A DNA stretch of 64,000 bases from Octopus sinensis (Eukaryota). A program made the translations under genes and the position numbers. Shown here in pieces: positions 3,289 to 55,000 of the stretch. The notes under the pieces are model-generated. The model did no database searches and was not told the origin of the DNA. It was given only the letters and a program-made list of their open reading frames with translations. Location: assembly GCF_006345805.1 (NCBI RefSeq), contig NC_042998.1:183768001-183832000 (forward strand), read 5' to 3'. How positions within the stretch are numbered: the stretch's first letter is position 1; the number at the start of each line of letters is the position of its first letter.

Positions 3289-3712
3289 ATGTATGTATGT
3301 ATGTATGTATGTATGTATGTATGTGTGTATGTATGTATTTATGTGTGTGTGTATGTATGTATGTATGTATGTATGTATGTATTTGCGTGTGTATGTGCGT
3401 GTGTATGTATGTATGTATGTATGTATGTGTGTGTGTATGTATGTATGTATGTGTGTGTATGTATGTATGTATGTGTGTATGTATGTATGTATGTGTGTAT
3501 GTATGTATGTGTGTATGTGTGTGTGTATGTATGTATGTATGTATGTATGTATGTATGTATGTATGTGTGTATGTATGTATGTATTTATGTGTATGTATGT
3601 ATTTATGTGTGTATGTATGTATGTATGTATGTATTTATGTGTGTATGTATGTATGTATGTATTTATGTGTGTATGTATTTATGTGTGTATGTGCGTGTGT
3701 GTGAGTGAGTGG
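3289..3712. repeat. (TATG/TG)n microsatellite
   Basis: About 420 bp of degenerate TATG/TG repeats; source of the MYVC pseudo-ORFs. Confidence 0.97.
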
Positions 3713-7994: not shown

Positions 7995-9017
7995 CGTATG
8001 ATTTCAACTCCGCATGAAGATCGATAAGGACATGATCAATAAGGACATGTTGAACTTTGCAAACTACGACTCAGACTTCATGAAGACCAACATCAGCGGT
8101 GATGAGACATGGGTTTATGGTCTCTGCTCAATGTGTTCGTTCGGTCATCCTGCGTGGAAACGAAATCCGACGAGCGCGCACTACACGTCTATACATATTT
8201 CTTTACTACCCAGAAGGGGCTAAACACAGAGAGGACAAACAGGGACAGACAAACGGATTAAGTCGATTATATCGACCACATTGCGTAACTGGTACTTATT
8301 TAATCGACCCCGAAAGGATGAAAGGCAAAGTCAACCTCGGCGGAATTTGAACTCAGAACGTAACGGCAGACGAAATACCTATTTCTTTATTACCCACAAG
8401 GGGCTAACATAGAGGGGACAAACATGGACAGACATAGGTATTAAGTCGATTACATCGACCCCAGTGCGTAATTGGTACTTAATTTATCGACCCCGAAAGG
8501 ATGAAAGGCAAAGTCAACCTCGGCGGAATTTGAACTCAGAACGTAACGGCAGACGAAATACCGCTAAGCATTTTGCCCGGCGTGCTAACGTTTCTTATTT
8601 CTTTATTGCCCACAAGGGGCTAAACATAGAGGGGACAAACAAGGACAGACAAAGGCGTTAAGTCGATTACATCGACCCCAGTGCGTAATTGGTACTTAAT
8701 TTATCGACCCCGAAAGGATGAAAGGCAAAGTCGACCTCGGCGGAATTTGAACTCAGAACGTAAAGGCAGACGAAATACCGCTAAGCATTTCGCCCGGCGT
8801 GCTAACGTTTCTGCCAGCTCGCCGCCTTAGACTACACGCCTATACCGTAGGCGTAACAGCTGGGAACTAACGCGGCCTACCTGCACGAAAGCTTTCGTTG
8901 CATGCGCAGGAAAGATGACGTTGCTTCTCAACCTAAAGGGTTTTTCTCGCACGGCAAAAAACTTTATATTTGGCGGGAAAAAAAATAAAGTCAGACACTT
9001 TTTGGACGTAACTCATA
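7995..9017. mobile_element. Decayed mariner-type element interrupted by a SINE trimer
   Basis: DSDFMKTNISGDETWVYG resembles the mariner 'I.TGDETW' first-Asp motif; TIR-like tcagacactttttggacgtaactcata at about 8991-9017. Confidence 0.55.
8195..8826 (-). mobile_element. Head-to-tail trimer of the Tx1-tailed tRNA SINE (family S1)
   Basis: Units 8595-8826 (full head GGCGGCGAGCTGGCAGAAAC), 8380-8594 and 8195-8379; outer TSD ACTACACG(T/C)CTATAC at 8180-8194 and 8831-8845. Confidence 0.93.
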
Positions 9018-12637: not shown

Positions 12638-13029
12638 GATATTTGAGTACTACAGCTGTTTCAAACGCAGGTCGGTTGCATCTTAAGTAACATTACGAAT
12701 GTCTTGTAGCCGTGCCGTGTACTTTTTTTTTTTTATATCTGCTACATATAGCTGTTTCGTTGAAAGTAGTCCGCCGTAATGGAGGATACGGACTGCTTGT
12801 GGCTTTCGAAATGGAATTATATAGCACCTGTCATATTATCGGAATTTTTCTGCCTAATCTCAATATGGGACGAACTGTATTTGATGCATTGATTAAAAAG
12901 TTTTATTGATCAATTATCGAGTCATTTTTCTTTTACTTTTTCTTTTGTTTTTGTTTTTTATATACAAGACGTGTTTATGCTAGAGACTAACAAACTGTAT
13001 TTTACCACGATCACTCGACTGATTCTACC

Positions 13030-13556: not shown

Positions 13557-13639
13557 ATAATATAAGATATACACACACACAAACAAACGCGTCGTGCACA
13601 CACACCGTACGCACACACACTACGCACACACATATATAT

Positions 13640-14417
13640 ATGCATGTATGTATGTATGTATGTATGTATGTACTGATGTATGTATGTAGTATGTATGTAT
13701 GTGTGTATGTATGTATGTATGTATGTATGTATGTATGTATATGTATATGTATGTATGTATGTAATGTGTTGGTGTGTGTATGGTATGTATGTATGTATGT
13801 ATGAATGTATGTATGTATGTATGTATGTGTGTGTATGTATGTATGTATGTATGTATGAATGTATGTATGTATGTATGTATGTGTGTGTGTGTATGTATGT
13901 ATGTATGTATGTATGTATGTGTGTGTGTGTATGTATGTATGTATGTATGTATGTGTGTGTGTATGTATGTATGAATGTATGTATGTATGTATGTATGTAT
14001 GTATGTATGTATGTATGTGTGTGTGTGTATGTATGTATGTATGTATGAATGTATGTATGTATGTATGTGTGTGTGTATGTATGTATGAATGTATGTATGT
14101 ATGTATGTATGTATGAATGTATGTATGTATGTATGTAAGTATGTATGTATGTATGTATGTATGTAAGTATGTATGTATGTATGTATGTAAGTATGTATGT
14201 ATGTATGTATATATGTATGTATGTATGAATGTATGTATGTATGTATGAATGTATGTATGTATGTATGTATGAATGTATGTATGTATGTATGTATGTATGT
14301 ATGTATGTATGTATGTATGCATGTATGTATGCATGTATGTATGTATGTATGTATGTATGTATGTATGTATGTATGTATGTATGTATGCATGTATGTAAGT
14401 ATGTATGTATGTATGTA
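13640..14417. repeat. About 780-bp (TATG)n tract
   Basis: Read directly; source of the YIHT/MYVC pseudo-ORFs. Confidence 0.97.
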
Positions 14418-23142: not shown

Positions 23143-23184
<42 letters not shown>

Positions 23185-23259
23185 TTATTATTATTATTAT
23201 ATTATTATTATTATTATTATTACTATTACTATTACTATTATTATTATTATTACTATTAC

Positions 23260-23294
<35 letters not shown>

Positions 23295-23331
23295 CTATTA
23301 CTATTACTATTATTATTATTATTACTATTAC

Positions 23332-23428
<97 letters not shown>

Positions 23429-23450
23429 ATATTATTATTATTAATATTAA

Positions 23451-23505
<55 letters not shown>
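23143..23505. repeat. (TTTA)n/(TAT)n microsatellite
   Basis: Read directly from the sequence. Confidence 0.97.
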
Positions 23506-23508
<3 letters not shown>

Positions 23509-24798
23509 TAGTTTTAATTTTATAGCGTACTTTCACTTCACTACCGAGCGCAGCTCTGTGTACCTTAGGTATGTGCTGTGATTTGTTGTGATGCTCTGAT
23601 GGTTATTGTATTGAAAGTGTTTTGCGTAGGAAGTGTGCAGTGCCTAGTAGTGCAATTTTCTGTATGTTATATGTGTTTGTAAGTCCTGGTGTTTTGATTA
23701 TGTATTTGTCTGAATATTTTTTTATCATGCCTAATGCACCTACTATGATAGGAATTGTTTCTGTTTTTAGATTCCACATTCTAGTTACCTCTATTTCCAG
23801 GTCTTTGTATTTTGAAATTTTCTCCATTTCTTTTAGAGAAACGTTGTCATCTGCTGGTATTGATACATCAATTAGAAAGCATTTTTTTCTTCATGATCTC
23901 TGACAACTATATCTGGCCTTTTGGCCTTAATTTCTCTATCTGTGTGTATTGGAATATCCCAGAGTATGGTTGCTTTCTCATTTTCTGTGACCTTTTCTGG
24001 TGTGTGCCTATACCATCTTTTTTCTGTTGTTATTTCATAATGTTGGCATAGCTTCCAGTGTATGTAGGTCCCAACTCTGTCGTGTCGGTGAATATATTCC
24101 TTCTTAGCCAGAACTGGGCAGCCAGAGATAATATGATTTATTGTTTCTTGTCCATCTCCACATACTCTGCAGTTACTTGTTATATTTCTTTTCATTATAT
24201 GTTTTTGGTAATCTCTGGTGGGGAGGCTTTGGTCTTGTGCTGCAATTAAAAATCTCTCTGCCTCTGCTTTGAATCCTGAGCTTCTCAACCATTGCTGAGA
24301 TTTTTCTTTGTCTATTTCTTTTGCATTTAGTTTAGTCCAGTATTTGCCATGAAGGGGCTCTTCTTGCCATCGTTTTATCATGGTCCGTTGCCGTTCTAGT
24401 TTTAGTTTGGATTTCATTTGTTTTATAGCTTTTCTTCTTCTTCTTCTTCTTCTTCTTCTTCTTCTTCTTCTTCTTCTTCTTCTTCTTCTTCTTCTTCTTC
24501 TTCTTCTTCTTCTTCTTCTTCTTCTTCTTCTCTTCTTCTTCTTCTTCTTCTTCTTCATCATCATATTTGTTAGGTGGTATGATTTCTTGTTTGTATTTGT
24601 CAGCTTCCTTAAATACTGAGAACAGTTTTTTTAAAATTTTGCTCGTGTTTTGCCGCTATTTGTATCAGTTTTCCTTGCTTTTGAAGTAGGTATTTTTGCA
24701 GTCCTATGCTGGTTATTTTATAATAGTTTTCCTGTTGTATAAGGCCTCTACCACCTTCTATACGTTGTATATATAGCCTTTCTATGTCAGTTAGAAAG
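23506..24798 (-). mobile_element. 5'-truncated R4/Dong-type element flanked by (TAA)n on both sides
   Basis: CRVC...ETINHIISGC (CCHC), RHDRV, WD.PI.TDR....RPDI (RLE), EKISKYKDL; TAT repeats at 23160-23505 and 24800-24857. Confidence 0.9.
24432..24556. repeat. (TTC)n expansion inside the LINE ORF
   Basis: About 40 TTC units. Confidence 0.95.
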
Positions 24799-28185: not shown

Positions 28186-28459
28186 GGATCTTTTCGGTTT
28201 GAACGGCAGTTTTTTTAAAATAATTTCCACGTAACTAAACACTTTTAAACTTCGTATACTGGTAGAATATGTTCATAAAACATCTTTTTCTCTTGGCTTT
28301 ATTGAGAAAATTCTTGGAAATTATTTTAAAAAACTGCCGGTCAAACCGAAAGGATCCGGTGTTGCACATGCATATAGTGCCAATATGCTGAATTTCTGAT
28401 TCGATTTCATTCCTACATGATAGGCTTTCAGAAGGACGCCGTTCAAACCGAAAAGATCC
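28186..28459. mobile_element. Rearranged M1 MITE derivative (two copies of the same end plus an extra TIR)
   Basis: TIR at 28186, inverted same-end TIR ending 28357, third TIR ending 28459. Confidence 0.75.
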
Positions 28460-29093
28460 CAATGCGTAAATATGAAGTGACACAAAACTAGATTATTCAA
28501 GTCTTTCTCAGCTATCTTTCATTGCATGTTGAATAAGTCGACACGATTGCAATACGTTTCAGAAGATTTCTAACGTCGATCGTTTAATAAACTTGTTAAT
28601 CGTTTATTTTCTTTCTTGTTATTAGTAACACTAGAATGAGATTACAGGAGATACATAAAAAAAAGAAAGAAAGAAAAAAAGGAAGAAAGAAAGAAAAAAG
28701 AAGAAAGAAAAGGAAAGAAAGAAAGATAGCTTCAAAAGGATTTATTCAACCGGAAGGAATGCTCTAAGATAATTTTTGCTGTGGAAAATATAGTTTTCGG
28801 CCATCATAAAAATAACTCCAATTTCAGCTTCAATGTGGCTTGCTATATTATGCTGGAAGAGATAAACTGCATCTGCTGCACTGATGTTGGTGTGTGTGTG
28901 TGTGCGTGTGTGTGCGCGCGCGCGTGTGTGTGTGTGTGTGTGCACGTGTATCTGCGCGCGCGTGCGTGTGTGCAAAAAAAAAACATGTCGCAGTTAACTT
29001 GAAATGAGAGTCAGTTTGCTATCAAAAGATACTTTTTCACAGCAAAAATTATTGCGAGAACTCTGGTTGGGTTACAAATTTTGAAAGGTATTG

Positions 29094-29507
29094 GGATCTT
29101 TTCGGTTTGAACGGCAGTTTTTTCTTGCGGTGTCATATGAAATTGTCACCCATAATTATGACCCGAGTATCGATCTATTGCATTTCAATCTGTTTTAGGT
29201 TTAAGGTTAGGGTTAGGGGTGAGGGAAGGGTATCTTTTTTTTCTTCAGAAATGTAAATATACCCAATCTGTTTCTTAAACGAGGGACATATTCATACGGC
29301 ACAGAATATTTTCACCTCAATAGACGTCATTGATTGGTTGAAATTGAAGAAAAATAACAACAAATATCTTACAAACTATAGAATTTTCTCAATAAAGCCA
29401 AGAGAAAAAGATGTTTTATAAACACATTCTACCAGTATACGAAGTTTAAAAGTGTTTAGTTACGTGGAAATTATTTTAAAAAACTGCCGTTCAAACCGAA
29501 AAGATTC
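29094..29507. mobile_element. M1 MITE (opposite orientation)
   Basis: TSD AGGTA(T/A)TG at 29086-29093 and 29508-29515; internal ggttagggttagggg. Confidence 0.92.
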
Positions 29508-36560: not shown

Positions 36561-36616
36561 TGAAAAACATATATCAGAAAAGAAGCACACTGTAAAGAAT
36601 GGAGCTGTTATTGTTA

Positions 36617-37462
36617 CAACAAAATTTTATATTTTAGACATAGAGTTATCCAAGGTTCCGCATCCACAAACTCAAAGCCTTGTGGACAGTTCGTCAGACT
36701 CTATATAAAGACAAAAATTTTTAATTTCTACATCGCTGACCTGAGAAAACGCTCAGAAATCGAGAAATACGTCTTAACAAAAACGTTAATGAGGACAGGT
36801 TATCTTCCTCGAACCAGAGGAAATAAAACAACCCTTTTAGGCCTGAAGAGGCCTAACTAGCAAACGGGGAGATCCAATTTTCCAGTAAGTAACGTTTGAA
36901 GAGGACACATTTAGAAAACACTTCTTTACGACTATTTAACGCGCCAGGTTTCGTATAGTCCCAAAGAATTTTGGCTCTCTCCGATATGCAGATCTTGCAA
37001 CGGTCATTTCCATTAATACATGGGTCCGGATGATCAATTAATTTCCACCTGAGATCACACGGGGCCCCTTGATCTTTGAGGTGTCACACATGGCGGGCCA
37101 GGTACGTGACAAACCGTCCTTACGGGACTCTGAAGGTTGACTGGTGGTTAAGAAAACGTCGCTTGGAAGCAGTACTAGCAGATCCATTATATATTTACAA
37201 ACATGGGATGTGGCCATATTCGCACCCCTGGTAACATATGGTATGGGGCCAGTTATCCAATCGGTATCGAAGGGAATTATTTGGTCGTCATCTGAGCTGG
37301 TGGTACTGGGAACGCCGGATACCTCCTCCATGTTGCTGGTCCTGGATTGGTCATCATTTCTAGGTCTGCGACGTATAGAGTCTGACGAGCTGTCCACAGT
37401 GCTTTGGCTTTGTGGATGCGAAACCTTGGGTAATTCTATGTCCAAGATATAAAATTTTGTTG
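36617..37462. mobile_element. 846-bp TA-flanked TIR element (Tc1/mariner-type non-autonomous) with about 90-bp TIRs
   Basis: TA|CAACAAAATTTTATAT... and ...ATATAAAATTTTGTTG|TA; arms 36617-36706 and 37372-37462. Confidence 0.85.
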
Positions 37463-37707
37463 TATATATATATATATATATATAAGTAGTGAATAGCTAC
37501 CAAATACCTAAGCCAAGATTCAAAAGCGAAACCACATTTTGTCACAAGCCATCGGCTTTTTGTTTTCGCCTGTTGCAATAGGAAATTTATAAGAATAATT
37601 TGACCTCTCAGTCTTTCACGAGTCATACATAGTTCAGAACTGATACAGAGGAGAAATCCTTTATTTTTGACTTAATTTAGTTAGGAAAAATATAAATAAA
37701 CAACCAC

Positions 37708-42068: not shown

Positions 42069-43784
42069 TAGGGTGTCCCAAAAGTCGCGCATCATCCTGT
42101 TTTCTTTTTTAAAAAATACACCTTTATTGAAATTAATCATAACAAATGCTCAAATTCAGCATCCTCTGCAATAAAATATGCATCAATTCTCTTTATGAAA
42201 CTATCTTTCACACTCCCGAGGGTGGAAAGGGTGACCTTTCGGCACTCAGTTGTCATTGCATCCTTCAAAGCATCAAGAGTGCGTGGACGATTCTGGCACA
42301 CAACAGATTTGAGATGTCCCCAAAGGAAATAGTCAAGGGCAGTAAGATCCAGGGATCAGGGTGGCCACTCCACGGAACCTCTCCGTCTAATCCATCAGTT
42401 AAGAAAGGTCTGGTTTAAGTAGTTACGCACGCAATTAGTAAGGTGTGCTGGAGCCCCATCTTGCTGCAAAAGGAAGTTTTTTCATCGAAGTGTGGGAACA
42501 TCCTCAAGATAGTCAAACAAGAAGGTCTGCAGGGGCTCTGAATAGGTTTCACCGGTGACATCTTTATATATAAAAGTGAGGTTGTGTGCTGTCTGTCTCC
42601 TACGATTTAGATTCCTAACTACTCCCACATTTTGCGGTGCAGTTTAACCAAAACCGGGTATCTTATAGTCGTGATTCATATCGAGCCCTTCTCGATATTA
42701 GCGCGCGTCTACGATGAGTCTACGATTTAAAAAAAAAAATTACCATCAATTTTTCCCATTTTTTAATGCATTTTTGGCATATATTAGGGAAGTAACTCTC
42801 TAAAAATTTATTATTAAATCTCAGAACGTAAAAAGCTTCAGTAACACCCCCCCCCCTTTGTGGTTAGCCATATTAAGATGGCTATTATACTTTACATCTC
42901 TAAAAATACTTCTATAGTTATTTCCCTTACAAACCCGAGCAACGCCGGGCGATACTGTTAGTTATCATTAAAAAAGTAAGCACCAATGATTTCTTCCTCC
43001 CAGATTCCAGCCCAGACCATGATCCTCGGGTTGTTCTTTCTGATGGTGTCCCCTCCTCATTCCAACGTGGATTGTTACCTGACCAATAGCGCATATTGTG
43101 CCGGTTTCCTTGGCCAATCAAATGGAAAATGGCTTCATCACTGACGAATATTAAAGAATCTTTATGTGCGTGAATCCATTCACAGAATTCCAATCGTGGA
43201 TCTTTGTTATCACCATGAAGAGCTTGCACAGGGTGCGCTTTGTACGGATGAAATTTGTGAGTCTTGAGAATACGATGCACTGATGATTTGCTAATGTTTA
43301 CCTCCTGGCTTCTCTTCTGACTCCTGGCTTCTCTTCACAGGACTACTAACAACTTTCGCCAAAATAATTGTGGATGTTTCTTCACCAGTTACACACTTTG
43401 GTCACCCATATCTCTTATGGTCAGCAACTAAGCCATCTTCTTGGAAACGTCTGATTAAACGGCAGACAGTAGTATGGCTCAATGGCTCTCGCTCAGGGTG
43501 TTTCCGGTTGAATTCTTTAGCTACTGAGCGGTGTATTGCCCCATCTCTTCCAAACATGAAAACAATTTGAACTCTTTCTTTCACTCTTAGTTTACTAGCC
43601 ATAATTAAATCTGAAAGATAGAAAAGATAGAAAATAAATTGAATATAATAAAATAAATTGGAAAAAAAATTTAGAAAAATAAATTGAATAAAATAAAATA
43701 AATTAGAAAAAATAAAATAAAATAAATTGCCTCAATTATTTTTAATGAAAACCAGAATGGTGCGTCATTTCTGGGACACTCAGT
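42069..43784 (-). mobile_element. Decayed IS630/Tc1/mariner element (DUF4817-type HTH) with a Helitron inserted
   Basis: MASKLRVKERVQIV...HTTVCRLIRRF, F.SDEA.FHL.G..NRHN.RYW, QQDGAP.H, WPP.SPDL; TIR-like gggtgtcccaaaagtcgcgcatca / tggtgcgtcatttctgggacactcag. Confidence 0.85.
42561..42961 (+). mobile_element. Non-autonomous Helitron
   Basis: A|TCTTTATATATAAAA...CCCGAGCAACGCCGGG...GTTAG|T. Confidence 0.92.
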
Positions 43785-46960: not shown

Positions 46961-48470
46961 ATACATGCATTCTTGCCATAAAATAGCTGTGAAGATATAA
47001 TTAATCATGAGAAGGTTTGAAAATCCAGGAATCGAAATATCACACTTACATTTTCTGTGTTTCTATTGACTTCGATACAGTCAGTGTTGTATGATGCATA
47101 GTTAGTTTCAAGTCTATATATATAAGAGGTTTTCTAGGCGTCTTTCTTTTGAGCTTTTCTTTTCCAGTTAAGTCCAGGTGTAGGAAATTTTAAGAATGTC
47201 CGTTGGGATAACAGCAAGAGATTATTTGTCTTTTTTTATTTCCTACATACCAGCAAGGATAGATTTCTTCCGACCTTATTCGCAGAATGATGCCACAAAC
47301 ATTTCCGCTTTAGACACAAGGCGACTAATATTAGAGGAAGGAAGTTGGTTAATCGATACTATCGATTACAGTACTTGATTAGTATTATATTTTATCGACC
47401 CTGAAAGAATGAAAGGTAAATATAAATCATTTTTTTCGATGCTCTAACGACTCCGCCTCTAACGATTCCGCTAAATCAGTGTGATGCAATAACCAGTACG
47501 TGGCTTGCATAGATTTTCTGATTCAGGCACACGATCAGCAACCCTAGAGGAGGGATGTAAGTTGATAGTAGGGTGGAGGGCACGATGCATTTCGGGGTAG
47601 TGCGATCGAGTTGGTTAATCTCCGCTCGCGTCCATTTCAGGATGAATTCACTCTAGCGGACTACAGCAACAGCCCATATGTTGATGGCAGTCACAAGGTT
47701 CCTTGAGTCAACTTCTTCTTGAAGTCAGAACTCAACAGGAGAGGAGATTGACCAACTCGTTCGCACTACCCAACTAACAATGATATTGTATGGTGTCCTC
47801 CACCCTAAGGCGAACGTACACAGGCTCTACATGAAAAGGTGTAAAGGTGGACGTGGGCTGGTTAGTGGAGTGCATCAGCAGTGAAAGAAGAAACATGGCA
47901 GAATATTTGGTAAATGGCAAACGAGACCTGCTACAGTATGCTGCTAATGCGGAAGGATTTATCAAATATGGACTTGAGAATGCTAATGAATTCCGATCAC
48001 GAATAACCAACGAGAGAGAAGAAACTCTACTCCGCATAGAATTACATGGTCAGTTCCACCGTGAAACTAACCAGGTAGCAACATGGAGGTAGCTCAGCAA
48101 GGGTGACGCTAAAAAAAGATTGAAAGCCTTACCATCGCTGCCCAGGATCAGGCAGTGAACACCGAGTGAAAAGGGACATATACCACACAAATGCAACGAA
48201 CCTCCGCATAATGTGTGGGAAGAGGGTCGAAAGCGTGACTTACATTGTTAGTGCTTGTGAAAGTCTTGTGCTGAAAGAGTACAAGCGCAGACACGACAAG
48301 GTGGCACAGAACCTTCATTGGCTACTATGCCGGAAGTATAGATGCGAGGTAACGGGTGCTTGATACCAACATACACCAGAAAAGGTAGTGGGCGAAAAGG
48401 GGAAGGCAAAATCGTCTGGGACTTTGACTTCCAGACAGACAAGGTGTTAGGATACCGAAGGCCGGATATT

Positions 48471-48682
48471 CTTTTCTACTCTAGGCACAAAGCCCGAAAT
48501 TTTGGAGGACAGGGGCCAGTCGATTAGATTAACACCAGTACGCAACTGGTACTTAATTTATCGACCCTGAAAGGATGAAAGGCAAGTCGACCTCGGCGGA
48601 ATTTGTACTCAGAACGTAAAGACAGACGAAATACTGCTAAGCATTTCGCCCGGCGTGCTAACGATTCTGCCAGCTCGCCGCC
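48471..48682 (-). mobile_element. Full-length tRNA SINE (S1 head, alternative tail), 3' half of the U6-SINE chimera
   Basis: Head GGCGGCGAGCTGGCAGAATCG at 48682; tail ...aaaatttcgggctttgtgcctagagtagaaaagaata. Confidence 0.93.
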
Positions 48683-48688
48683 ATTTAT

Positions 48689-48727
48689 AAGATATGGAAC
48701 GCTTCACGAATTTGCGTGAGGCCATGT

Positions 48728-48761
<34 letters not shown>

Positions 48762-48780
48762 TTACTGTCGAAGCAAGTAC
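48689..48780 (-). pseudogene. U6: U6 snRNA retrocopy with internal deletion, fused 5' of a SINE
   Basis: Minus strand GTACTTGCTTCGACAGTAAATATACTAAAATTGGAACGATACAGAGAAGATTAACATGGCCTCACGCAAATTCGTGAAGCGTTCCATATCTT matches canonical U6 from nt 1, including the ACAGAGA box; about 14 nt are missing after GGCC. Confidence 0.95.
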
Positions 48781-49196
48781 ACCGAAGGCCGGATATTGTA
48801 AGCTTTAGAGGGGCACATAAGAGTGCCTAATAATCGACGTGACAGGGCCAGGAGATCAACATATTATCACGAAAGAAAGAGAAAAGATTGATAAATATGG
48901 AGACCCGAGAATTGGGATCGCCAAGGTGTGGCTGCTATGAGAGTCAAACATAAAAGTTGTCTCTCTTGTCATCGGAGCATTGGGTTCAATACCACCCAAC
49001 CTGAAGAAACATCTGAAAACTTTAAAAATACCCTACAACCTAGGTGTATTGCAAAAATCGGCATATTGTGTAAAATACTGTTTGTTTGAGGTCCTTGTGA
49101 CTTGACAGTACAAACCCCCGGTTGACATGATATCTTCAGTCAACATCATGATACTGGATACTGTGCGACGTCTTAAATAATAATAATATTATTATT

Positions 49197-49256
<60 letters not shown>

Positions 49257-49257
<1 letters not shown>

Positions 49258-49510
49258 TTTTCTTTATTAACCACTAAGGGTTCACAAAATCATTGGGGGC
49301 GTTACAGGATAATATGATGTGGGATTACATAAAAGGCGTGCAAAAAGTAAAAAACAGTAACAAAATAAAATTATAACAATGAATAATTCTCGCAAAAATG
49401 GAGACTTGTTAGGGTTGCTCGGGAGACTCCACAAAACCACGGTCGTCCTGACCACTAGGGCAAGTGCCCAATCCACATCGTCCGCCTTCAACCTACAGCC
49501 ACATACTCAG
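49257..49510 (-). mobile_element. Tx1/L1-type 3' end running into (ATT)n
   Basis: Minus strand ends ...cccttagtggttaataaagaaaac|attattatt, the same terminal motif as the other Tx1 tails. Confidence 0.6.
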
Positions 49511-49519
49511 AGTAGGCCC

Positions 49520-50543
49520 ATTCACTCAGACCATTCTTGCAACATTCATCTACCTTATTGCTGGGATGTATTGCTTTCTGGCAAAAAACAACAATACAAA
49601 TGTTAGTTAAGAAATGGTGCGTCACGGGCTCAGTGCACACCGTCCCAAAACAAAAGACTCTACAGTTCGAACGCCAGAAGTTATTCAGAACGTTCACCAA
49701 AAGATTACTTGAAGTTTAAAGAAGTCAATATGTAAATTGGCGCCACAGTCTCACATAAGTAGAAAGTTGAAGCCATATCATTTCACATGTGTACAGCAAT
49801 TAAAAATGGACAAGTATAAACGAGTAAATTACTGCACATGGCTTCTGAATAGCATTGCTAATGGTGAGCTAACCCATTCTAGTACACAATGAGTGATGAG
49901 GCATGGTTCCATCACTCTGGCCACGTAAATTCACAAAATATACAGTACCTGGCGGTGAAAATCCTCCCCTTGTACATGAGCAGCCACTCCACAATAAAGA
50001 AATCGGTGTTTGGTGTGCTGTTTCAGGAATACGTACCATTGGACCGATATTTTTTGACAGTACTGTCAATACGGAGGTCTACATAGACATTTTGGACTAA
50101 TTTTGTGCTCAATTCACTGAAGATGAGAAACAGTTGTATTTCTTCCAGGAGGATGGAGCGACTTTCCACTCTTCTCCGGTGTCCGTGGGATCTTCTCTGG
50201 GGAACGCACTGTTAGCAAAAATTTGTGGCCGTCACGTTCACCTGACCTTTCAACGTGTCATTATTATCTCTGAGGACACTTGAAGAGTACGGTGTACAAA
50301 CAAACAAAAAATCCGCTCATAATTCAAGAGCTGAGGGATAATATCACGCAAGCATTCGCCGTCATCGATGTCATTATTTTGCGCCGGATGTACGTAAATA
50401 TGGTTAGACGTGCACAACTATGTATTAATGCCGCAGGGAATCATTTTGAAAATCTTCTGAGTCCTTTCCAGCAGTTGTAAATTTGTTTCTGTATTTACAG
50501 TATGCTTCGGAACCCGAGCGACTTTTTCTCGCACCACACTGTA
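49520..50543 (+). mobile_element. Decayed IS630/Tc1/mariner element (DUF4817-type)
   Basis: KTTIQMLVKKW..TGSV, MSDEAWFH.SGHVNSQN, GVWCAVS...IGP.FFD, FQEDGAT, WPSRSPDL; right end ...gcaccacactgta. Confidence 0.85.
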
Positions 50544-54380: not shown

Positions 54381-55000
54381 TATTCTTTTCTATTCTAGGC
54401 ACAAGGCACGAAATTTTTGAGGAGAGAAGGCCAGTCGATTAGATAAACCCAGTACGCAACTGGTACTTAATTTATCGACCCCGAAAGGATGAAAGGCAAA
54501 ATCGACCTCAGTGGAATTTGAACTCAGAACGTAAAGACGGATGAAATAACTCTAAGCATTTCGCCCGGCGTGCTAACGTTTCTTATTTATTTATTGCCCA
54601 CAAGGGGCTAAACATAGAGGGGACAAAGAAGGACAGACAAAGGGGTTAAATTGATTACATCGACCCCAGTGCGTAACTAGTACTTAATTTATCGACCCCG
54701 AAAGAATGCAAGGCAAAGTCGACCTCGGCGGAATTTGAACTCAGAACGTAGCGGCAGACGAAATACCTATTTCTATTTCTTTACTACCCACAAGGGGCTA
54801 AACACAGAAGGGACAAACAAGGGCAGACAAACGGATTAAGTCGATTATATCTACCCCAGTGCGTGACTGGTACTTATTTAATCAACCCCGAAAGGATGAA
54901 AGGCAAAGTCGACCTCGGCGGAATTTGAACTCAGAACGTAACGGCAGACGAAATACTGCTAAGCATTTCGCCCGGCGTGCTAACGTTTCTGCCAGCTCGC
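54381..55000 (-). mobile_element. Second SINE trimer (two Tx1-tailed units plus one alternative-tail unit)
   Basis: Junctions GTTTC|TTATT at 54582/54583 and AAATACC|TATTTC at 54767/54768. Confidence 0.93.

Follow-up and report, generated by a model that had tools for sequence, protein, structure and literature searches.

A U6 snRNA and a SINE inserted as one unit into an old Octopus LINE, probably as a chimeric retrocopy

How did a copy of the U6 small nuclear RNA (snRNA) come to lie directly upstream of a short interspersed element (SINE) in Octopus sinensis? The two sit on the minus strand of a 64,000-nt stretch of NC_042998.1 (here called the window), within the remains of a long interspersed element (LINE). 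An earlier note on this DNA had proposed that they were inserted together, either because the pathway that forms U6 chimeras in vertebrates had acted on a SINE RNA in an invertebrate or because the unit belongs to a U6-headed composite SINE family; read-through from a U6 copy next to a SINE was named as a third fit. The coordinates in that note all check against the sequence. Our results support entry as one unit, and we favor the first of the three explanations: the unit is probably a one-off chimeric retrocopy from a single event of target-primed reverse transcription (TPRT).

Read on the minus strand from 48797 to 48454, the order is AATATCCGGCCTTCGGT, U6 (GTACTTGCTTCG... to ...GTTCCATATCTTA), TAAAT, the SINE (GGCGGCGAGCTGGCAG... 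to ...CCTAGAGTAGAAAAG), and AATATCCGGCCTTCGGT again, with U6 directly 5′ of the SINE and in the same orientation. The outer repeats are a target-site duplication (TSD). As the 17-mer ACCGAAGGCCGGATATT, it occurs exactly twice in the window, at 48454–48470 and 48781–48797, and the two copies are identical at 17 of 17 positions. One copy adjoins nucleotide 1 of U6, and the other adjoins the end of the SINE tail. If SINE arrays, tandem repeats, and one element resembling a miniature inverted-repeat transposable element (MITE) are set aside, this is the only exact direct repeat of at least 17 nt at a spacing of 100–1000 bp in the window, and none of 20 block shuffles yielded such a repeat. The unit, 310 bp without the TSDs, is further marked by the 30-nt junction gcgttccatatcttataaatggcggcgagc, the deletion signature catggcctcacgc, and CATGGCCTCACGC.

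Although the perfect 17-bp match around the whole composite stands, the net duplication is 12–17 bp, as the opening AATAT of the TSD is shared with the SINE tail. Since the SINE consensus runs ...GAAAAG+AATAT(A), the first 5 nt of the 3′ copy (minus strand, 48470–48466, AATAT) equal the 3′ end of the consensus and are ambiguous between tail and target. The 5′ copy (minus strand, 48781–48797) is wholly target-derived because its plus-strand ATATT falls in the D-I codons of RPDIV; the RNA 3′ end thus had 5 matching nt in the target. From these sequences, there appears to have been AATAT microhomology between the SINE RNA 3′ end and the nicked target.

The interrupted LINE lies on the plus strand. 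Its upstream part (47780–48453, start approximate) is degraded, with several frameshifts and stops, and runs up to ...VLGYRRPDI, the last codons being formed in part by the 5′ TSD copy. The downstream part (48798–49256) reads VSFRG..IIDV..KEREK..GALG.., its frame ends at about 49103, and an (AAT)27 tail occupies 49176–49256. When the insert and one TSD copy are removed, ...VLGYRRPDI is joined to VSFRG..., and the conserved RPDIV codons are restored. Thus, the TSD does split the RRPDI codons of a LINE, as had been claimed. When the stitched translation was aligned with six LINE relatives from other marine invertebrates (Logan, NCBI, and ENA contigs), the R, P, and I of RPDI were invariant. The C-terminal region of R2 holds a zinc knuckle and a restriction-like endonuclease (RLE), and in a search of solved structures the profile of our alignment matched this region (9nl2_A, residues 879–1019, E 7.4e-07). 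Because of this match and the conserved RPDI residues, the host is best classified as an old, degraded LINE of the R2-like, RLE-bearing type (R2/R4/Dong group). Its (AAT)n tail and the Dong element reported in an O. bimaculoides repeat library (PMC9115989) are compatible with placement in the Dong clade, whereas the note's "Dong-type" is borne out by the sequence no further than an R2-like C-terminal region. Pfam assigned no family to the stitched C-terminus, and the window contains no DNA-level empty-site paralogue of the host.

A better preserved fragment of the same LINE type lies at 23872–24564 on the minus strand. Its open 230-aa frame, which ends ...KAKRPDIVVRDHEEK, is fused to a poly-Arg run made by a (TTC)42 microsatellite, and a protein encoded on a Logan contig from run SRR7158634 shares 90% identity with this fragment.

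If U6 and the SINE had been inserted separately, an internal TSD pair would be expected, and the earlier note had named such a pair as what would overturn its proposal. We found no internal direct repeat of at least 6 nt in TSD position around U6 alone or the SINE alone. The sole 6-nt match, TCTTAT, sits 42 nt upstream of U6, and the sole internal candidate repeat is a 5-nt ATATC at 48695–48691 and 48469–48465, which is at an offset. Together with the single perfect TSD, the normal SINE 3′ end, and the restored host motif, these results support the entry of U6 and SINE as one unit.

The ATATC pair could also be read as the trace of two successive insertions at one hot site. In that case, a U6 pseudogene truncated after ...GUUCCAUAU would have been primed through AUAU/AATAT and flanked by a 16–17-bp TSD, and the SINE would later have entered the regenerated AATAT with a 5-bp TSD (ATATC) and 8 filler bases. 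The pair would then account for the C after AUAU, and re-use of an AATAT site is plausible given that the SINE tail ends in AATAT and that head-to-tail SINE arrays exist; by our estimate, ~4% of AATAT sites may hold a SINE. However, the chance of a 5-nt match at that offset is also estimated at ~5–10% (our screen covered repeats of at least 6 nt), and the readable TSDs of this SINE family are 10–17 bp, not 5. Moreover, a stringent LINE, which recognizes the tail, is not expected to make U6-only retrocopies (PMC4476161), and two rare events would be needed at one nucleotide. We therefore regard two insertions as improbable. A chimera of assembly or sequencing is extremely improbable, given that genuine retrotransposition leaves just such marks: a perfect TSD, a U6 boundary exactly at +1, and a normal SINE tail.

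What has become of the U6 part? Rfam places U6 (RF00026) at 48780–48688 on the minus strand with 63.7 bits (gathering score 44; E 9.5e-14), spanning model positions 1–105 and not truncated. Thus, the copy does begin at the exact first nucleotide of U6, position 48780. U6 is the sole Rfam family above its gathering score in the window and, at E ≤ 1 in E-value mode, the sole match there that does not fall in a microsatellite. After CAUGGCC, 14 nt (consensus CUGCGCAAGGAUGA) are missing from the internal stem-loop region. The AGC triad of UUAGCAUGG reads AAC, and the terminal UUUU positions read CUUA, with the Rfam alignment running through model position 105. In the 5′ stem, standard pairs are present at four of five positions. 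Compared with the human and fly U6 sequences, positions 3 and 17 are both altered (A-U), and this A3-U17 change may be native to U6 in this species and not a product of decay. The copy is not a functional gene: it is dead, and the inserted unit is inert, its U6 having neither an upstream promoter nor the 14 nt of the internal stem-loop. The 14-nt gap may date from after the insertion, or the internal stem-loop of U6 may have been skipped by the reverse transcriptase.

The window carries a heavy microsatellite load, for example (TATG)197, (ATGT)102, and (TTA)108, with arrays at 3289–3692, 13635–14417, 23182–23505, and many other places. In E-value mode these arrays produce several dozen false Rfam matches to microRNAs and small nucleolar RNAs (mir-297, mir-3149, SCARNA7, and others).

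The partner of U6 is a full-length, 212-bp member of an abundant Octopus SINE family (minus strand, 48682–48471), with head GGCGGCGAGCTGG..., B-box-like GAGTACAAATTCC, and a "type A" tail ...CCTAGAGTAGAAAAG. It has at least 10 relatives in the window at 80–92% identity. As a second sample we used a 76-kb stretch of O. bimaculoides chromosome CM046612.1 around the LOC106868243 gene, in which the family gave more than 20 matches, including full-length copies that are 86–89% identical and have the same tail. The element is thus short, non-coding, and present in many copies, and it has defined ends and TSDs, as befits a SINE. Its 3′ end, ...GAAAAGAATAT / GAAAAG-AATAT(A), is present in five of 11 tail-bearing copies, the focal one included, and close variants occur in four others. 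The focal tail, ...CCTAGAGTAGAAAAG(AATAT), is the family tail and was seen in two window copies (again counting the focal one) and in several O. bimaculoides copies; the composite therefore ends at the normal 3′ end of the SINE family. TSDs were seen at three other insertions of the family. The one other copy with a readable TSD, at 12917 of the O. bimaculoides stretch, is flanked by ATATACAAAA / ATATACGAAA, which begins ATAT and so resembles the AATAT start of the focal TSD.

The focal SINE begins at GGCGGCGAGCTGG, where the other intact copies begin as well. Therefore, the SINE is complete, and part of what had been described as a linker is possibly its own leader. The earlier note gave this linker as 6 nt, ATAAAT. 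The bases are present, though the first (48688) falls within the Rfam alignment to U6, leaving TAAAT (minus strand, 48683–48687), and part of the remainder may be the SINE's own (T)AA leader. Among 15 comparison copies (the other 5′-intact copies of the window and the O. bimaculoides stretch), eight have AA directly before the head, five of these eight have TAA, and two further copies have TAA shifted by one base from the head. The A/T bases at the junction could be filler from a template jump, the SINE's own leader, or both.

The note had also called the element a full tRNA-SINE. Its full length is borne out by the matching 5′ and 3′ ends, but the transfer RNA (tRNA) head is not. ARAGORN reported nothing in the SINE head at default settings, with -ps90, or with -ps80, and the Rfam tRNA model gave no match at E ≤ 1 on the window and none at E ≤ 10 on the best SINE copy. 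The head contains the B-box-like GAGTTCAAATTCC and only weak A-box matches. A tRNA ancestry that has diverged past detection is possible. In a literature search for the SINE sequence, we found no report of it.

Is the U6-SINE unit one member of a composite SINE family that amplifies and takes its head from U6? Such families have precedent, as snRNA-headed SINEs exist (SINEU; PMC4494074). An internal deletion in the head is also the kind of mark that families share, and this SINE family makes recurring composite multimers. Against it, U6 lies upstream of none of the 15 comparison copies, and no second U6 is present in the window and the O. bimaculoides stretch, although these ~140 kb (126 kb without Ns) are too small a sample to exclude a U6-headed family of a few thousand copies. 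The SINE internal promoter starts transcription near the SINE 5′ end, downstream of the U6 part, and a U6 head therefore would not be inherited. Nor has an internal promoter been reported for snRNA genes (PMC4494074). On these grounds the family explanation is disfavored, and we consider it quite unlikely. More broadly, octopuses might have a lineage of composite SINEs with U6 heads, transcribed from flanking promoters or by read-through, that includes this unit or was founded by it. We find this version very doubtful; if true, it would be the first case of an snRNA-headed SINE beyond the crocodilians and also the first whose head comes from an RNA polymerase III (Pol III) snRNA.

Searches of larger collections returned no second unit, with little power to decide for or against a family. 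Junction-spanning peptides, compared with 5.8 billion proteins, revealed no second U6-SINE junction, a test of low power. The junction-crossing stop-to-stop peptides had a single match, the uncharacterized O. bimaculoides protein LOC106868243, in which the matching part is an antisense translation of the SINE only, with no U6. Exact look-up of two 38-aa junction-spanning open reading frames (ORFs) and two longer window ORFs in an assembly index returned no record. At the DNA level, the pattern GTGAAGCGTTCC-N5-25-GCGAGCTGGCAG had no match in prokaryote genomes and one in metagenomes, both being collections without cephalopod DNA, so that neither outcome counts as a true negative. We attribute the metagenome match (Ga0307412_10000046, 1127–1159; 24 specified bases) to chance, as the contig is GC-rich and evidently bacterial. 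This chance match shows the false-positive level of gapped patterns. As for LOC106868243 (152 aa; 10001–66298 of the O. bimaculoides stretch), part of it is an antisense reading of two neighboring SINE copies, and either exonisation of a repeat or an annotation artefact is the probable explanation.

Other composites of the same SINE family bear on how two RNAs can end up in one insertion. In the window, a trimer at 8826–8196 (minus strand) consists of three head-to-tail SINE units within a single 13-bp TSD, ATAGGCGTGTAGT / ATAGACGTGTAGT. One unit is full-length, one starts from AGAAACG (~nt 16), one starts from GGTATTTCG (~nt 49), and all three have a second tail type, ...CCCCTTGTGGGCAATAAAGAAATA. 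At the 5′ junction of the trimer is a CTAA that is explained by neither TSD nor head and that matches the filler at the U6-SINE unit. In O. bimaculoides, three SINE copies lie in a row at 65995–66631 of the stretch. The last two are joined as tail-AATAT-AA-head and flanked by a decayed repeat of ~13 nt, ATGCTAGATGGAT / ATACTAAATAGACT; this dimer is the SINE-SINE analogue of the U6-SINE unit. Such composites fit a reverse transcriptase that readily continues onto a second RNA. The alternative is re-insertion into AATAT tails. Composites under one TSD thus suggest that the machinery of this family often joins two RNAs or re-uses tails.

A second SINE triplet occurs in the window at 54385–55000 (minus strand). 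It has the same two internal breakpoints as the trimer in the other order, and its last unit has the focal "type A" tail. The recurrence of these breakpoints suggests a composite multimer subfamily or tail insertion hot spots rather than random truncation.

A model that accommodates these observations is as follows. The LINE machinery that normally mobilizes this Octopus SINE would have nicked an AATAT-containing site in the old R2-like, RLE-bearing LINE. Priming would have occurred on a SINE RNA, whose tail likewise ends in AAUAU, and the RNA would have been copied to its 5′ end. The reverse transcriptase could then have continued onto U6, by a jump from the SINE RNA 5′ end to the U6 3′ end with the addition of a few A/T bases; alternatively, SINE RNA and U6 may have been ligated beforehand. 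U6 would have been copied to its first nucleotide, and cleavage of the second strand 12–17 bp away would have produced the flanking duplication. The model rests on what the sequence shows: the anatomy of the unit, one TSD around it, SINE ends of the normal kind, a host frame that is restored when the insert is removed, and no other U6-headed copies nearby. From these we infer the order of copying, which either a jump or ligation would fit. Of the three explanations that had been offered for the unit, the absence of U6 from all 15 comparison copies and the published U6/SINE chimeras favor a chimera-forming pathway acting on a SINE RNA in an invertebrate.

The exact U6 +1 start could also have come about by read-through. 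If a U6 gene had a promoter but a weak or broken terminator, and a SINE followed within a few bases, Pol III may have made a U6-spacer-SINE RNA, and the LINE machinery, recognizing the SINE tail, would have retrotransposed the whole RNA. From U6 nucleotide 1 to the SINE tail, T never occurs four or more times in a row, the position of the U-tract reads CTTA, and the SINE head is preceded by bases like the A/T-rich leader or flank of other copies. However, read-through requires a special source locus, and none was seen in the ~140 kb examined. The loss of 14 nt and the change of AGC to AAC would make the source gene non-functional unless these changes came later, and published TSD-flanked U6/SINE composites have been explained without read-through (PMC4476161). 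We judge read-through unlikely, though one locus cannot separate it from a jump or from ligation.

Four points weigh against a one-off chimeric retrocopy. The U6 3′ end reads AUAUCUUA, not AUAUUUUU, and at least one substitution or a longer filler is needed. A partner LINE that shares the SINE tail (...CCTAGAGTAGAAAAGAATAT) was not found within the window. A full-length SINE partner with a 5′ leader fits read-through too. Finally, "one-off" rests on the ~140-kb sample and the promoter logic, from which we infer that there is no such family genome-wide. A one-off chimeric retrocopy nevertheless remains the reading that we favor.

The window also contains repeats of other kinds. The MITE-like element is a 172-bp unit at 28186–28357 with 34-nt terminal inverted repeats (GGATCTTTTCGGTTTGAACGGCAGTTTTTT...), and the same end appears again at 28438–28463 and 29090–29123. 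An inverted repeat of 91 nt, 89% complementary, has arms at 36615–36705 and 37374–37464 that lie 668 bp apart, and opposite-strand ORFs there share peptide motifs. By eye, the translations at 49500–50100 (plus strand) and 42927–43280 (minus strand) look like what is left of a DNA-transposon transposase, for example ...DEAWFHHSGHVNSQN...; Pfam gave no match for the piece at 42927–43280, the only one tested.

How does the octopus unit compare with known systems? U6 fused to L1, L2, RTE, the SINEs Mon-1 (platypus) and AnolisSINE2 (six cases, lizard), and Alu was described by Doucet et al. (2015; PMC4476161). These chimeras are TSD-flanked and were ascribed to a template switch from the retroelement RNA to U6, which the authors called a general property of non-LTR (long terminal repeat) elements. 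A second route on record is that RtcB ligates U6 to other RNAs ahead of reverse transcription (PMC6789731). In a literature search for U6 chimeras in invertebrates, we found nothing. The novelty implied by the earlier note was nonetheless overstated, since U6/SINE chimeras made by non-L1 LINEs are already on record from platypus, lizard, and human (PMC4476161).

The closest relatives are the vertebrate Group IV snRNA pseudogenes U6/Mon-1, U6/AnolisSINE2, U6/Alu, and U6atac/Alu (PMC4476161). As in these, the octopus unit has U6 immediately 5′ of a retroelement in the same orientation, here a SINE, with a single outer TSD and the normal 3′ end of the element. The vertebrate SINEs are likewise mobilized by a non-L1, tail-recognizing LINE, and the events have been attributed to template switching during TPRT. 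That survey covered only vertebrates, whereas the host here is a mollusc, and the octopus junction differs in having a few filler bases. The chimeras made by platypus L2 mostly have a 5′-truncated U6 and TSDs of 1–9 bp (PMC4476161), while the octopus unit has the full U6 5′ end and a 12–17-bp TSD. In U6/L1 chimeras (Buzdin 2002; Garcia-Perez 2007; Moldovan 2019, PMC6789731), a full-length U6 is fused by its 3′ end to a TSD-flanked retroelement, as appears to be the case here. There, the partner is a 5′-truncated L1 and priming uses a T-rich site and poly(A); the octopus partner is a complete SINE with no poly(A), apparently primed through AATAT microhomology.

If our model is correct, a cephalopod joins mammals, platypus, and lizard as a setting in which a LINE reverse transcriptase runs on from a SINE RNA to U6, which would support the view that template switching or U6 ligation is general to non-LTR retrotransposition. 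New composite SINEs are believed to arise in this same way. No function is expected of the unit, a single decayed copy, but it is of use in marking a mechanism and perhaps as a character to be scored as present or absent across Octopus species.

Two further systems set the unit in a wider frame. The SINEU families of crocodilians (U1/U2-headed; Kojima 2015, PMC4494074) also have an snRNA-derived 5′ part, a head that probably came from template switching. These families have many copies, with internal deletions in common and with master copies, whereas one copy is seen in octopus, headed by U6. In Magnaporthe, bipartite and tripartite chimeric retrogenes (PMC2104539) show that outside vertebrates, too, a LINE reverse transcriptase can join different cellular RNAs in one insertion, although the host is a fungus and the RNAs are WEIRD and MGL, neither U6 nor a SINE. 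Thus, the octopus unit represents no new mechanism but a known class of chimera in a mollusc host, with a SINE that was apparently AATAT-primed.

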